From assembly GCA_025603075.1 (NCBI GenBank), contig MU626258.1, positions 73,457 through 137,456 on the forward strand: 64,000 nucleotides of DNA, read 5' to 3'. Shown piece by piece: positions 981 through 46,814 of this stretch. Source of the DNA: Neoconidiobolus thromboides FSU 785 (taxonomy: Eukaryota > Fungi > Entomophthoromycota). Position numbers and translations under genes: made by a program. The notes below the pieces were generated by a model. It did no database searches and was not told the DNA's origin. It saw only the letters and a list, made by a program, of their open reading frames with translations. The stretch's first letter is position 1. Every line of letters starts with the position of its first letter.

Positions 981-3979
981 CTAAATAAAAAGACCATATT
1001 AGTAATTAGTTTAATGGATCTTTGAAAAGAGAAATATTGAAAATAGATACTTGAAATTGATTATGTTCAAACTATACAAAGTATTATTATTTTAAACTAT
1101 ATCCTATTTTATTTATACTCTTTGTTTAAATAATTAACACAAACTGTTTGGGCTGTATAGATTGATCTAATATGCATCTCAAATTTAGTTATTTTTAAAT
1201 AACCTACCTCTATTATTTGAGTATGAAAATGAAAAAAATGGAGTAAAATTAAGAAGGATGAAGTTTAAAACTTAAATTCTGTAAACTTAAATTTCAAAAG
1301 CAGAATAAAAATTTCTTTTTACAAAATTAAGAATTTAAATAAAATCATTAAAACAAGATTTGGTTCAAGTTGAATCTGATTGGTTAGAGGCTTGGCTTAT
1401 TTCAACAGATAACACATTATTTGCTATTTCTTAGTGGATCCTCCTTAAGTTGTTTCTTGAATAAAAAATAATGCATAAACTTGAAATCAGCTGATTTTTG
1501 AAGATTTTATTGACTTTGGTGGCGGAAGGGATTGCAAAACAGCTATTATGGAACGACTACTACCCTCTGTTAACTAGCATATAATTGTCTAATATTAAAT
1601 CAAAGCTTAAAACGCTCTATCTACTTCAAATCATCAAATTAAAATTAAGCATTTATTCTCCAATTTCGATTTTCTGGTAAATTGAATCAAAATTGAGTAC
1701 TTTTATTTCTCCCCACTTTATATTTTTAAAGTTTTATTGATTGAAATTTCACAAATTGGTAGCTTAAGAATTAAATTGATTATTTTATTCAATTTAAGCC
1801 AATGGCAGTGCTTACGAATGACACCTAGCCCAATACTCACTTTTTAGCTATTTATAGGGGGGTGGTTATCATAATTTGCAAGCTTAGTTAATTTGCAGCA
1901 CAAATAATGAATATTATCATATTAATTTAATACGATAGTATATTCTTATATTAAAAATGGACTTTGTTTAGATGTAATCGTGTAGCAATAAGGAATTGCA
2001 AATATTGGAAATTCACTTTTTGAATTGTTTTGCTACCATCCTATATTATTTAACACGGTGATTATATCAAATGAACCATACTAATTACTGTTTGTGATTA
2101 ATTATTGACTTGTTCTAACATTTCATATATTTTTAACTGCAACTTTACAATTGATAACATTTAAAAGTTAAATCGTTATTTTTAAATTAATAATAATCTT
2201 ACTTTATAAAGTGTTTAGAGAAAAGGCTGAAAAATCAATTGTTCTTGATACTAATTATAATATTTAATTCCTTTCAAAAATTTTAATTTCAATATTTTGA
2301 AATTCATAAAATCTATGATTTATAAATTCAACAATTAGCCTAAATTTGTATTATCTAAATCTTGAATTTGAAGGCTGAATTTATGTTAATTTATTATAAC
2401 AATATTTTAAAATTCATACTTTCAACAAAAAGAACACAAGAGACATAACATATAGGGTATAAGCACCTTATATAAAGATCTGTCGAATAACTGCTATTTT
2501 ATTAAAAGAAATGAAAACCTAGCGTAGATAGCGTTGATTTGATTATATAATCTTTCTAATATTTATTTTGTCAAAGATATTTCAAATGAGTATCTTAGTG
2601 AGATTGAAAGTTGAATAGACCATCATGTTCTTTTTGGAAAAGACAGTCCACGATACATGATTGAACTGTTATTAAATAGATTGATTGTATTGTTATTCAA
2701 GCTATCATACATAATATAATCGGAGCATTGGCAAAAGCATCATGTATGCGTGAATCATTTTTAATCTATAACTAATAAGCATTTAAGATTAAATTGGCCT
2801 TAATTATAAAAATGTATTTTGTGAATAAAATTTATTCTTATTAGAAACTATTATAAATAATAGTATCAATATAAACATAAATAAATGACATCAATTTCTA
2901 TATCTAAATATTTATTTCTATTTAAAAATATTTGAATAAGTTAGAATTATAATGTTTATTTTCTTTGTAGTTATATTATGTAAAGAGTATTATAAAAATG
3001 TATGTGCTGTGTATGAATGAGGAGAGTAAAGGACAATGGTTAGAGAATTTGCCCAAATTATTAACACTTTATGAGCCTGGAAATATTATAGTAATGTAGG
3101 CATTAACAATGATGATTCTTTTAATTTAATTCCTCACACATTGATCTGACACCTCTTATAGCATTTTGTTTATTATAGTAAATTTTTCAAATCACTTTTA
3201 AAAAATCTATTATGTAATTTTTGTCTTTATAAGGATTTTTTATTGATATCAAATAAAATATTTTGCTTCACATTTATTTTTAGTAAAGTTTTTAGAAATT
3301 ATTTTTTTAATCATTTTTTTAATCATTGTCAAATATGACACCTTTTTAAAGGAATTTTTATTAAAATTAAAGTTAATTTAATAATTAAATTAAAAGCTCA
3401 TGCTTGTTATAATTATTTTTAATACATTTTTGTTTTTAGACTATAATAATTTATGGAATTTAATCACTATTATGTTATTTAAGTTTTATTCATGTCACCG
3501 AGTATAAAAAATTATATGTATATTTCATGGGTATCAACATTGACCAGTTTTGTTCTATTAAATAATGGTGACATTAAAATAAGTAAAGCTTTACATAAAG
3601 AAATTTAAAATAATTTTAACTCCATGGTCCAATTTCTCCTTATTTTTTTCATAATTTAAATAAATATAATGAAGCACTACAACGGTCAAAAACTCCACCC
3701 TGTTCCCCTCCTTTAGTTTCGACGTTTATTACTACCCTCAATTTGATATAATTTAAAAGATAATTTGCTATAAGCACTGATGCAATAGATAATCTATAAA
3801 ATCAAGTAGCAGTAAAGCTACACAAAATAGGCAAGAAGCAATTTACAAAAAAACTCAAAATAAACAGATTATCTTATATTTAATAAAACAAAAAAATCAA
3901 ATATCAAAGCTACATTAAAATCGATAGGCTTCCACTTAAATTCTTGACGAAGGGAATGCATAAATTATTAAGAAAACAA

Positions 3980-4843
3980 TCAATTATCTTTGTTACCCTT
4001 ACCAGGCAATTGCGGAATTCCTGGGCTTGGTAAAGGAGACCCTGAAGCTTGTGAAGACCAGTATTCTGTTGTTCCATTTGGTCCAAGTTTTGAAAATCCT
4101 TGAGCTCCATAAGGTGAAATTTGGGGAGGTGTATACATATTACCAATGTTTGTATTTACACTGAGTGGCCCAGGACTATGTAAATTTGGCTGTGGGTAAT
4201 GAGAAGCATATCCAAAATAACCGGAATTGATTGCTGGTGGAGGCGCACAAGCTGGTGTCATGTTATTTTTATCAGGTGAAGATTTGGTAGCATCGTAAGG
4301 CAATCTATTTTGAGATCTATTGACTTCGTTATAATACTGATAATGATTAGCGGCAGCGGCAGCTCTTTGTGCTTCTAATTGCATGGTTTGAGGATCTGGA
4401 ACATTTAAGCATGCTTGTATAAGCCCTTTTCCTTCAGGCTTGGTTACAATAGGTTGTAGCTTTGGAGTAGTAAAAGTGTAAACTAAGCCAGTTTCGGATA
4501 CAACAAGCAATAATACTTGAGTACCGGTTAAAACAGAGAGCTCATATGCTTTCTTCATAATCCCTGCTTTCCTTTTAGAAAAAGTTATATGACGACGACT
4601 CTTATCCTTAATATATTCAATTTTAATCTTTCTCTTATTCTCTTTCCCATCTTTAATTCCATCTGAATCCACATCTTCTTCATTTTCATATGGCTTTTTA
4701 AATGAAAAGTTATTATCGTTTCCATAGTTATCTGGACGTGGTGGCAGATTGGAAGTTATAGTATTACCTTGTGAGTATTGATATTGGTTATTATTAGCAT
4801 AGTAAGCTGTCTCGTTAGATTGGTCAATAGTAGTAGAATTCAT
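3980..4843 (-). CDS. MCM1: SRF-type MADS-box transcription factor (Mcm1)
   Basis: RKIKIEYIKDKSRRHITFSKRKAGIMKKAYELSVLTGTQVLLLVVSETGLVYTF is the SRF/Mcm1 MADS domain. Confidence 0.95.
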   Translation of the reverse strand: MNSTTIDQSNETAYYANNNQYQYSQGNTITSNLPPRPDNYGNDNNFSFKKPYENEEDVDSDGIKDGKENKRKIKIEYIKDKSRRHITFSKRKAGIMKKAYELSVLTGTQVLLLVVSETGLVYTFTTPKLQPIVTKPEGKGLIQACLNVPDPQTMQLEAQRAAAAANHYQYYNEVNRSQNRLPYDATKSSPDKNNMTPACAPPPAINSGYFGYASHYPQPNLHSPGPLSVNTNIGNMYTPPQISPYGAQGFSKLGPNGTTEYWSSQASGSPLPSPGIPQLPGKGNKDN

Positions 4844-40271: not shown

Positions 40272-41021
40272 ATGTTTCTATTCTATTCATATCTAGCATT
40301 AACTCATTTATCTTTACTTATCACTTCAGCCACCCTAAACTCCACTTCCATTGATTCAGTGGAGCAGCAGGGTTGTATGCCATGGAGAGAAGATTTCAAT
40401 GGTGGTATGGGTCAATTTATTCCTGAAGGCCAAGCTAGTGTAGTTAATGGCAAATTAGTAATGAAGATTTCCTTGGGTAATACCCCTAACCCAACTACGG
40501 GAGTAATAATGGGGTATGGATCAAAAGTAACTTCTTCTAATAAAGTATTATATGGTACCACAACCGCTCGTATTAAGACAAGTCGAATGGGTGGAGTAGT
40601 AAATGCATTTATCTTAATGTCACCAGAAAAGGATGAAATTGATTGGGAATGGGTAGGAAAAAACGAATATTCTTCCCAAACGAATTATTATTATAAAGGT
40701 ATTTTAGATTATACTAAAGGTAATTATATTACCAATGGATTTAATACCCATGCTGATTTTCATGATTATTCTGTCAAGTGGACACCAACTGAAATCACCT
40801 GGATGATAGATGGAGCACCTGTAAGAACTTTAACTAAGTCTATGGCAGGTGATAATTTCCCTAATACTGCATGTAATATTTATTTTTCTTTATGGGATGG
40901 TGGTAGTAATGCAGCTGGTACTCGTGATTGGGCTGGTGGCTTGGTTAATTGGAATGATCCAGAATACACTAGAAATGGGTATATGTCTTCAGAAGTGGAG
41001 TATGTTTCTTATACTTGTTAA
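40272..41021 (+). CDS. Secreted GH16 Crh/Utr2-like transglycosylase (single catalytic domain)
   Basis: Reads ATG TTT CTA TTC on the plus strand (the track strand label is wrong). Signal peptide, GVVNAFILMS, KDEIDWEWVG catalytic ExDxE, FHDYSVKW and WAGG motifs. Confidence 0.92.
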   Translation: MFLFYSYLALTHLSLLITSATLNSTSIDSVEQQGCMPWREDFNGGMGQFIPEGQASVVNGKLVMKISLGNTPNPTTGVIMGYGSKVTSSNKVLYGTTTARIKTSRMGGVVNAFILMSPEKDEIDWEWVGKNEYSSQTNYYYKGILDYTKGNYITNGFNTHADFHDYSVKWTPTEITWMIDGAPVRTLTKSMAGDNFPNTACNIYFSLWDGGSNAAGTRDWAGGLVNWNDPEYTRNGYMSSEVEYVSYTC

Positions 41022-42965: not shown

Positions 42966-44941
42966 TTATTGAGGGGATTCTGGATGAGGTGGGGTATCGA
43001 AACCAGGAGTGGAATTTGATTCATCAATCTTTTCAAATTCTTGGGATGAAAATTCATGAGATGAAGTTTCAAATGTAATCTTTTCCTCAACTTTAACATT
43101 TTCAACTTCTAGTTCTTCTTCAGGTTGTTCTAAACCAGCATCTTCAATTATTTTTTCCGCTGTTAAAAGATTCTTTTCCATCTCAGCTTCAAATAATTCA
43201 AGTGGTTCTTTGGATTCGACAACTACTTCTTCTTTAGTTTCAATTGTTAATGTTTCGACCACTTCAATTTTCTTTTCTTCTTCTACTTGACCATAAGTTT
43301 GTAAATAAAGTACATCTCCAGTTTGAATTGGTTTCAAGGCTACTAAACTTAATTTATGATTACCATCTTTAAAGACAGCTTTAACATTGGCTTCAGTTTT
43401 AGAAGCGGCAAGGAAACCACTAACTACGTAAAGGCCAAATGCATTGACTGGTTCTTCAGTAACAATTTTAATGCCTTCAGGGACAAGTGGGTTTTCAACT
43501 ACTTTATCTTCACTCTTTATAGTTGAAAATCCAAGGATACCTTGGCCAATCTTACTCTTCATATTTTTATAATAAGCCAAATCAACAACTAAAAAATTTA
43601 GATTAATTTAAATTTAATAAACAAGTTCAATATTAAAATTACCATGTTCAATACCTTGAGTTTCAACAGAGACGTATTGACGTAAATGGTCGAGTTCTTT
43701 AGTAAGAACATCATCTGATTCTTCAAAATCAATTGGAGCTAAACGCTCAACATGTTGCATGATAGTATATTTTTCTTTTGGTAAATTCTTAGCGGTACGG
43801 ATACTGTGCTCTTTGAATACTTTATTAAGTACTCGAGCCATAGTAACTGGGATTTTTTTGCCGGTTTTGTATGATTCTTCAAGGATTTGAATAGCTTCTG
43901 GTGATTTAATTAAACTTTCTTCAATGTATTCAATTTTGGAAGCCTCTAAACAAGCCTTAGAACAGAAATTTGATTTAAGATAACTGTATGTTGGTTTAAC
44001 TTCTTCTTCAGAGCTTAATTCTTTAAGACAATTTCCACAGAATCCTTTACCCTATTTATTTTTTAAACTTATAACTAAATATAATTAAAAATCAGCTTAC
44101 TTCATAAGCTGGTTCTAAAGTGGTGATAACTGGCAATTCAGTATAAATTTCATCACCTTCAGCAAACTCCTTCATAGTAGCAAGTTCATAGTCTTTGAAG
44201 GTAACGGCAGCAGAAACATCACGTTGAACTTTGGCTTCAACTAGTTTAACATTCATTTCAGGTGCTGGATTATCAATATAATAATCATTTAAAATAACTT
44301 GCATTTGTTCAAGCTGATAATATTAAATTAATATAAACTTATTATTTTATAGGATGTTTTTTACTTACCTCTAAAGCATAGATACTTGAAACAATTTCAT
44401 AACATTCTTCTGGAAGCATATTTTTAAACAAAAGAATGATTTCAACTGCATTTGGTACAACAAGAGCTGCACGAATAACGGCACAAGCACACTCTTCATA
44501 ATAAGCGGGACCTTTTTTGATAAGAATTAAGAATCATTTTTTAATAAATTAAATTAATAAACTTACCTTTAGTAGCTAATTGTTCAGCCATACTCAAATT
44601 ATAAAAAAGATAAGCTTCTACTTCTTTTTGAGATTCTGGAATTTGGTCCGCTTTTATTTTATCATATAACTGTTTATAACGAACTTTTTTATCTACTACT
44701 TTTTCTTCAGTTACAGTAACTTCTTCTTTTTGGATCTTTTTTTCTACTTCCTTATTTTTCTTTTCTAAAGTTGGAGTTAGTAGTCCATTTAAAATTGATT
44801 TATCTTATTCATATTACTTAAAGTTCTACGGAATTTAGCATCATTTCTACGTTTATAATCAAAGTAAATGGCATAAGATACACCACCAATAGCAGTGATA
44901 GCAATAGCCGATAAGAAGAAATTTTTTAAATTGAATTCCAT
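42966..44941 (-). CDS. TOM20: Tom20 (MAS20) fused to a degenerate SMYD-type SET/MYND domain (about 569 aa); exons 44941..44818, 44764..44567, 44511..44369, 44313..44101, 44051..43643, 43588..42966
   Basis: N-terminus AIAITAIGGVSYAIYFDYKRRNDAKFRRTL is the Tom20 signature. All five GT-AG introns keep frame (1710 nt) into EFAEGDEIYTELP, CGNC..FCSKAC and LSLVALKPIQTGDVLYLQTY. Confidence 0.88.
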
Positions 44942-45325
44942 CTTGAATAAAGCTTATCTAGAATGAGAAACCAAAAAATAGTAATTTATTGATTTTTTTA
45001 TTTAACTTTGTTCAATTGAAACTCCCATGACTTTGGGATTGATTCTAATAATTCGATAATTCCTTCCATTTCAAGTAACCCTTAGCTTATGATTTAATTG
45101 ATCAAATTATTTCTAAAATAAAAAAATAATTTAGTCGGGAAAATCTCGTATTTAAAACTCATATTTTAATTGGTTAACTTTTAAATTTTACCTTCTGCAG
45201 GAAATTGAAAACATTGATTGGCTCTGTCGAAAAGTGATAAAATTAAGCCAACCAACGATTCCAGCAATTACAAATTTTTTAAAACTTAAAAATTTTATAA
45301 AGTTTAACTTTTTAAATATTAAACT

Positions 45326-46814
45326 ATGGCATTAACTCATAATCTTGTTAAACAAGTCACTCGTCAATTAAAATCTTCTCCTGGTAATTATATTACTATA
45401 ATCATATAGTTATTAAAATATTTATTTTTTTATCAAATTAGCTGCTCGTTCCTTCTCCAACTCAGCATCTCGTAGAGGCTATGATGAAACTGTTAAAAAT
45501 ATGATGATCAACAGAGATACTAAAGTCATTGTACAAGGTTTCACTGGTAAACAGGTAATTTTAAAAAATGACAAAACCGAATTGATAACTTTATATTAAA
45601 TATTTATAGGGTACTTTCCATGCTCAGCAAGCTATCGATTATGGAACTAAAATAGTTGGTGGAGTATCACCAAAAAAAGCTGGACAAGAACATTTAGGCC
45701 AACCCGTTTTTGGCTCTGTTGCTGATGTAAATAATTATAATATAATTGATATTGAAGTTTTATTTATTTTGTAAAAAATTGGTAGGCTATGAAAGAAACC
45801 AAAGCTGATGCTAGTGTTATTTATGTACCACCACCAGGTGCTGCTGCTGCTATCCTTGAAGCTATCGAAAATGAAGTACCACTTATCGTAGCTATTACTG
45901 AAGGTATCCCACAACAAGATATGGTTAAAGTAGGTTATTTTCATATTCATTATTAATAATAAGTTAGAACACTAATTTAAAATTAGGTTAAACAAGCCCT
46001 TTTAACACAAAATAAGTCACGTCTCATAGGTCCAAATTGCCCAGGTATCATTAATCCAGATGGTTGTAAAATTGGTATTATGCCTGGTCATATCCATATG
46101 CCTGGAAGAATTGGTATTATTTTATTGTAATATATATAATATTGTTTATTTATTTTATTTTATTATTTTAGGTGTTGTATCTCGCTCAGGAACACTTACT
46201 TATGAAGCCGTTGACCAAACTACTCGTCATGGACTTGGACAAACTTTATGTGTTGGTATTGGTGGTGATCCATTCAATGGTACTAACTTTGTAGATTGTC
46301 TTAATGTTTTCCTTAAAGATGATAAAACTGAAGGTAATAATAATGAAATAACAATTTTAATAGATATATTAATTTGAATATATTAACATATGATTAATTA
46401 GGTATTATCTTAATTGGAGAAATTGGTGGTACTGCTGAAGAAGAAGCCGCTCAATATTTGATTGAGCATAATCTTTCACTTGCTAAACCAAAACCAGTTG
46501 TTTCTTTCATTGCTGGTCTTACTGCTCCACCTGGTCGTAGAATGGGTAAAATTTTTATGAAGTCTTGTTTTATATATAATATTAACTTATAATTTTATAT
46601 TAGGTCATGCTGGTGCTATTATTGCTGGTGGTAAAGGTGGTGCTCAACAAAAGATTGAAGCTCTTGAAAGTGCTAATGTTATAGTTTCTAAATCACCTGC
46701 CCGTCTTGGTGCACTTATGCGTCAAGTAAGTTTTATTTATTGTGTTTTTTAAAAGAGTATTAATTTTATTTTTTTCAATAGGCTTTAATCGATAATGGAA
46801 CCATTCAAGGTTAA
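45326..46814 (+). CDS. LSC1: Succinyl-CoA ligase alpha subunit, mitochondrial; multi-exon
   Basis: [49 protein letters not shown] and GRRMGHAGAII. Confidence 0.97.

Follow-up and report, generated by a model that had tools for sequence, protein, structure and literature searches.

Within the window, by which we mean the whole 64,000-nucleotide stretch of Neoconidiobolus thromboides DNA that was analysed, a single gene on the minus strand probably joins the mitochondrial import receptor Tom20 to a non-catalytic docking module derived from SMYD-type SET proteins and to an acidic tail. Tom20 is among the best-studied of all import receptors, and in fungi as well as in animals it is regarded as a small protein of one domain. 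A conserved and selected fusion of this receptor to a SET-derived pseudoenzyme would represent a new accessory module of the TOM complex, and also a new case in which a methyltransferase fold has been reused for binding. No paper describing a fusion of this kind emerged from a literature search for Tom20 together with a SET domain, SMYD, a C-terminal extension or Entomophthoromycotina, and this addition to Tom20 seems to be undescribed.

The gene runs from position 44941 to 42966, and its six exons join into one frame of 569 codons that ends in a TAA stop codon (1710 nt in total), as read from the sequence and checked by script (Table 1). An earlier note on this DNA had described six exons spliced in frame into one protein, with no stop codon after the MAS20 domain in the spliced frame, and both parts of that description are borne out. 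Introns 1 to 5 are 53, 55, 55, 49, and 54 nt long; all have GT..AG borders (three begin with GTAAG and two with GTAAT) and their G + C content is 11-25% compared with 27-36% in the exons. Any of the five, if retained, would bring an in-frame stop codon within 2-9 codons. At the composition of this DNA the probability of a stop is 0.085 per codon, so that the open stretches of 71 codons in exon 4, 136 in exon 5, and 206 in exon 6 would be expected by chance with probabilities of approximately 2e-3, 5e-6, and 1e-8, respectively.

Table 1. Features of the gene for Tom20 and its SET-like extension, in positions of the window. P0001 and P0003 are the related proteins described in the text.
Feature	Position	Strand	Content	Basis
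Exon 1	44818..44941	(-)	start codon 44941-44939; N-terminal membrane anchor and basic cluster of Tom20	Pfam MAS20
Exon 2	44567..44764	(-)	charged linker and first half of the Tom20 receptor core	Pfam MAS20
Exon 3	44369..44511	(-)	second half of the Tom20 core; phase 0 end at ...YALE	Pfam MAS20
Intron 3	44314..44368	(-)	55 nt, GTAAGT..CAG	border of the Tom20 part and the SET-like part
Exon 4	44101..44313	(-)	short conserved linker (YY..P.PE.NVKLVE) and putative N-SET strands (..GDEIYTE.P..TTL)	alignment to P0003 and P0001
Exon 5	43643..44051	(-)	reduced MYND-like zinc finger, then putative helical I-SET region
Cys codons of exon 5	44039-44037, 44030-44028, 43964-43962, 43952-43950	(-)
Exon 6, first 100 codons	43287..43588	(-)	putative degenerate C-SET, without Cys	profile alignment to SMYD3 200-248
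Exon 6, rest	42966..43286	(-)	acidic tail, probably disordered; stop codon TAA 42968-42966

The first three exons encode 155 amino acids, counting the two split codons, and these form a recognizable Tom20 with the membrane anchor and the MAS20 core of about this length that had been noted previously. Exon 1 matches positions 2-29 of the Pfam MAS20 profile with 36.7 bits (cut-off 27). Exons 2 and 3 match positions 30-90 and 94-130 of the 132 in the profile with 17.7 and 17.4 bits, which fall under the cut-off because each exon is a mere piece of the domain. The three matches are collinear from profile position 2 to 130, and their consecutive order validates introns 1 and 2. The anchor is a hydrophobic 19-mer (residues 8-26, mean hydropathy 1.74) and is followed by YFDYKRRND. 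In all of these respects, namely the N-terminal anchor with a motif of the YFDYKRRND type, the charged linker, and the core, the protein resembles the canonical Tom20 of fungi and animals (PF02064). Canonical Tom20 stops shortly past the core, at a total length of 145-185 amino acids; the protein described here, unlike it, continues for 414 further residues that comprise the SET-like module and the acidic tail, and its 569 amino acids place it outside the size range of Tom20 proteins, as is also true for Conidiobolus coronatus.

Relatives of the extension were sought with HMMER, exhaustively, among 1.84 billion representative proteins using exon 5 alone (136 amino acids) as the query, and two true relatives only were identified. 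One of them, P0001 (1.3e-10), is KAI0223066.1 from Massospora cicadina, a protein of 391 amino acids named 'mitochondrial import receptor subunit tom20, partial'. The other, P0003 (3e-7), is an ORF of 644 amino acids from a JGI metagenome contig, named 'import receptor subunit TOM20', which starts with the last 35 positions of MAS20 and continues as a homologue of exons 4-6. Exons 3, 4, 5, and 6 of the window gene tile along P0003 without gaps, with exon 3 aligned to its residues 1-46. The N-terminal stretch of P0003 is identical over the overlap to KXN67946.1 from C. coronatus NRRL 28638, which indicates that the metagenome contig belongs to C. coronatus or a close relative. Protein homologue searches with exon 5 and exon 6 found nothing within the length ranges used, the sole matches in an alignment-based protein search were P0003 and the C. 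coronatus model that is truncated, and scans of metagenomes for relatives found nothing.

The gene structure was compared among the window and three other loci: the metagenome contig (L001), the M. cicadina locus (L002), and the C. coronatus reference KQ964604.1 (L003). Introns 1 and 2 have the same place and phase in the window, C. coronatus, and Massospora; in L001, exons 1 and 2 end at the positions and phases seen in the window, and the third exon (2213-4155) then runs without an intron up to the stop codon. The same unbroken ORF is found in L003 (633 amino acids counted from an internal Met), so that both C. coronatus sequences encode the second half of MAS20 in one ORF with the SET-like part and the tail. 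Any message for the second half of the Tom20 core in this species must therefore also encode the SET-like part and the tail. Introns 3, 4, and 5 occupy the same places in the window and Massospora, whereas intron 3 is absent from C. coronatus. The residues flanking intron 3 (marked by a slash) are LHLE/LETKQKEF in Massospora and YALE/LEQMQVIL in the window, and the three MAS20 exons of L002 lie immediately upstream of its SET-like part. By this homology, intron 3 of the window gene is probably spliced. A fusion of Tom20 with a part of SET/MYND type within a single gene, as proposed in the earlier note, is thus upheld and is conserved in C. coronatus and Massospora. The fusion is probably old within the Entomophthorales, being common to the window genome and to two further insect-associated species of that order, C. 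coronatus and M. cicadina.

These comparisons bear on the suggestion that two adjacent genes have been wrongly joined, namely Tom20 up to about 44369 and a SET-like gene whose start codon would be the ATG at 44304. This ATG lies four codons into exon 4, and the Massospora locus is annotated as two separate pieces. Such an arrangement would, however, leave an intergenic gap of only about 65 nt, and it conflicts with the ORF that crosses the junction unbroken in two C. coronatus sequences and with the place, phase, and flanking residues of the intron that are conserved in Massospora, where the split in the annotation comes after a frame break. On the unbroken C. coronatus ORF, the conserved Massospora junction, and the spacing of approximately 65 nt, two separate genes were rejected, and we consider this reading scarcely credible.

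Another possibility is that one gene gives two products, so that retention of intron 3 or early polyadenylation would produce a Tom20 of approximately 163 amino acids as the main receptor, with the fused form being minor or conditional. Retention would bring a stop after eight codons of intron 3 and would yield a protein of the usual Tom20 length, and the deposited C. coronatus model, KXN67946.1 (160 amino acids, partial; L003:4001-4580), ends only five residues past MAS20. This model, however, has no stop codon and is flagged as partial, and so documents no short isoform; we read it as a truncated model rather than as a short form. In C. coronatus, which lacks intron 3, a short form could not arise by its retention, and in the window intron 3 resembles the other four introns. 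Two products are therefore unlikely, and a single fused protein remains the preferred reading. Beyond the end of KXN67946.1, the ORF extends for almost 600 further codons (L003:4431-6332).

The two C. coronatus-like ORFs (L001 and L003) also allow selection on the different parts of the protein to be measured. In the SET-like region (299 codons) dS is 0.227 and dN is 0.013, giving a dN/dS of 0.057 from 39 synonymous and 9 non-synonymous differences. The tail (288 codons) has a dS of 0.298, a dN of 0.041, and a dN/dS of 0.139, and in the MAS20 piece (46 codons) the values are 0.107, 0.000, and 0.000, respectively. These low ratios are signs of purifying selection, and they indicate that the extension is translated and constrained.

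The Massospora locus contains two one-base frame breaks, near positions 4005 (3995-4010) and 4660 (4650-4672) of L002, the first of which adjoins a run of six A. They could reflect assembly error or recent decay. The two breaks account for the partial state of the deposited Massospora model and for its omission of a conserved strand. The model bypasses both breaks with a late start and an over-long intron, and MAS20 is missing from it.

Several lines of evidence were used to establish what the extension is. A profile built from the orthologues of three species was compared with the PDB, and its best match was SMYD3 (E 7e-4, 22 bits), to which some 230 residues align collinearly (SMYD3 residue 22 to about 248), and SMYD1 ranked second; single sequences compared with the PDB gave no SET or SMYD match. 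The span matched in SMYD3 covers the N-SET, MYND (44-93), I-SET, and C-SET elements and stops at the start of the post-SET segment (243-270; PMC3105404). The Pfam SET profile (PF00856, cut-off 22.4 bits) has no match on exons 4-6 of the window or on P0003, and reaches 22.3 bits on the Massospora protein (E 1.8e-4), just short of the cut-off. Features from the ESM language model for the first 105 residues of exon 6 gave 30 matches, all 30 of which are SET clusters (score 0.93), and the corresponding region of C. coronatus also matched SET clusters (0.94, with 173 shared features), nine of the matches being SET + zf-MYND clusters. An AlphaFold model of the C. coronatus SET-like region, made from an alignment of five rows only, had a pLDDT of 38; with this model, SMYD2 and SMYD3 fill the top 32 ranks in Foldseek, at non-significant values (E 0.03-0.7, TM 0.2) that we do not take as support for the fold.

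Taken from sequence comparison, an origin of the extension from a SMYD protein is likely. By the profile match, the order of elements would be the one found in SMYD3, SMYD1, and SMYD2, with N-SET, a zinc-finger insert at the place of MYND, a helical I-SET region, and C-SET; unlike SMYD proteins, the module here is membrane-anchored through Tom20. Within fungi, yeast Set5 and Set6 are SMYD-like proteins in which the SET domain is split by a zinc-finger insert; they are soluble, and Set5 is an active enzyme. A protein of the Set5/Set6 type is, in our view, the likely source of the fused module. The earlier note had named the extension as a SMYD-type SET/MYND domain, and this stands insofar as the profile and the ESM features place SMYD proteins as the closest relatives, but does not stand as a full SMYD-type module. 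The proteins annotated as MAS20 with SET that it mentions were not encountered as such, the Pfam SET match being below cut-off and the public models truncated or partial.

It might be argued that the region following MAS20 is not derived from SET at all, and that a lineage-specific domain, carrying a small zinc knuckle, matches SMYD3 by chance. The E-values are only of the order of 1e-3, the Pfam SET scores lie at or under the cut-off, and the structural model is without confidence. Against this, the PDB profile search, the Pfam score on Massospora, and the language-model features on two separate pieces all lead to SET/SMYD, the match keeps its order along its whole length, and the positions of the four retained Cys correspond, in the MYND of SMYD3, to the first CxxC and the YCSxxC. 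We regard a chance likeness as quite improbable, and descent from a SMYD protein as the preferred explanation.

The module has nevertheless departed from SMYD proteins in its zinc ligands and in its catalytic residues. Exons 4-6 contain four Cys in total, all of them in exon 5 (Table 1), in the pattern C-x2-C ... C-x3-C. In the alignment, nothing corresponds to the middle CxxC or to the final H...C of the SMYD3 MYND. From what is known of the MYND cross-brace, the four Cys ligands presumably make up one site. A MYND domain has two interlocked zinc sites (PMC3136521), and with four Cys left, at most one of them remains; the C6HC pattern with two zinc sites that characterizes MYND is not found. 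At the place of the NH of NHSC in the SMYD3 alignment, the window has Ala-Ala (43409-43404) and Massospora has Asn-Ser, and C. coronatus has a longer, unrelated loop. Tyr239 of SMYD3 is essential, and its mutants Tyr239-to-Phe and Tyr239-to-Ala are inactive (PMC3105404); at this place there is Thr in the window (43298-43296), Thr in Massospora, and Lys in C. coronatus. In SMYD3 the post-SET zinc site is made up of Cys208, Cys261, Cys263, and Cys266, and the enzyme also requires Phe259 (PMC3105404). Exon 6 has no Cys, so this zinc cluster cannot form, and since nothing follows the C-SET save the acidic tail, Phe259 and the TPR-like C-terminal domain are absent. A GxG loop was not found in exon 4 when examined by eye against the N-terminus of SMYD3.

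In comparison with SMYD proteins, the module therefore has one zinc site rather than two and is without the GxG loop, the NH pair, the catalytic Tyr, the post-SET cluster, and the TPR-like domain. The absence of the S-adenosylmethionine-binding and catalytic motifs, together with that of the post-SET zinc cluster and the TPR-like domain, gives it the look of a pseudoenzyme rather than of a methyltransferase, and most likely it no longer methylates anything.

The opposing view accepts the fusion but holds that the SET-like module retains lysine methyltransferase activity, makes unorthodox contacts with its cofactor, and modifies precursors, TOM subunits, or chaperones on the surface of mitochondria. 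The strong purifying selection on the module, the retention of a SMYD-like order of elements, and the Asn of the NH pair in Massospora would all fit with this. An active enzyme would, however, have to work without the His of the NH pair and without a Tyr at the place of Tyr239, both of which are missing in all three species, without the GxG loop, and without the post-SET segment that is the source of Phe259 and of the zinc site needed for activity. Continued methyltransferase activity is thus very doubtful, and a non-catalytic module is the reading that we prefer.

The C-terminal tail of the window protein, of low complexity, has 106 amino acids with a net charge of -24, a composition that confirms the acidic tail described in the earlier note, and the tail of C. 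coronatus has a net charge of -62. The motif SSQEFEK(I/V)(D/E) at the extreme end (window 42969-43050) is common to the window and Massospora and absent in C. coronatus; it may represent a short linear docking motif. In the C. coronatus tail (L003:5600-6250), a unit of about 35 residues with KSFAEVAAEEPAADAP occurs four times in tandem, and the Massospora tail has three looser SYA..(V/I) motifs. The tails of L001 and L003 differ in length by 11 codons.

In the arrangement that we propose, the membrane anchor would be followed by the MAS20 core as presequence receptor, and then by a conserved linker that places the SMYD-derived module about 20 residues past the end of the core. The module itself would consist of N-SET, a MYND remnant with one Cys4 zinc site, a helical I-SET region, and C-SET, with the acidic tail of approximately 100 residues behind it. 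Tom20 sits in the membrane in the N-in orientation and exposes its C-terminus to the cytosol. By this topology, the module and the tail would lie on the cytosolic side of the TOM complex, beside the presequence groove. The dead SET fold would keep its peptide groove which, in combination with the negative tail, might offer an extra docking surface for basic segments of precursors or for partners such as chaperones. The earlier note had suggested precursors, chaperones, or ribosomes as what the module may bind.

Similar roles are known for other parts of the TOM complex, in which the acidic cytosolic domain of Tom22 holds basic presequences and the TPR clamp of Tom70 docks chaperones. The extension has no sequence relation to either, and any likeness would be one of role. 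We put forward as a tentative possibility that, throughout the order, a dead SMYD-type fold and an acidic tail have become permanent parts of the main presequence receptor and provide it with a second unit for docking precursors or chaperones. If so, recognition by the TOM complex in these fungi would differ from that in yeast and animals, for example through part of the role of Tom22 or Tom70 having been taken over.

The fusion also highlights a problem of annotation, in that public data hide it: the proteins carry Tom20 names but are represented by truncated or partial models, and Pfam is silent on the SET part. In the vicinity of the gene, the exact sequence of a neighbouring single-exon GH16-like ORF (40272-41021) is absent from a collection of 15 billion proteins. 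On the other side, a divergent gene on the plus strand starts at 45328, leaving approximately 390 nt (44942-45327) between it and the start of Tom20, and the two genes probably have a common promoter region.
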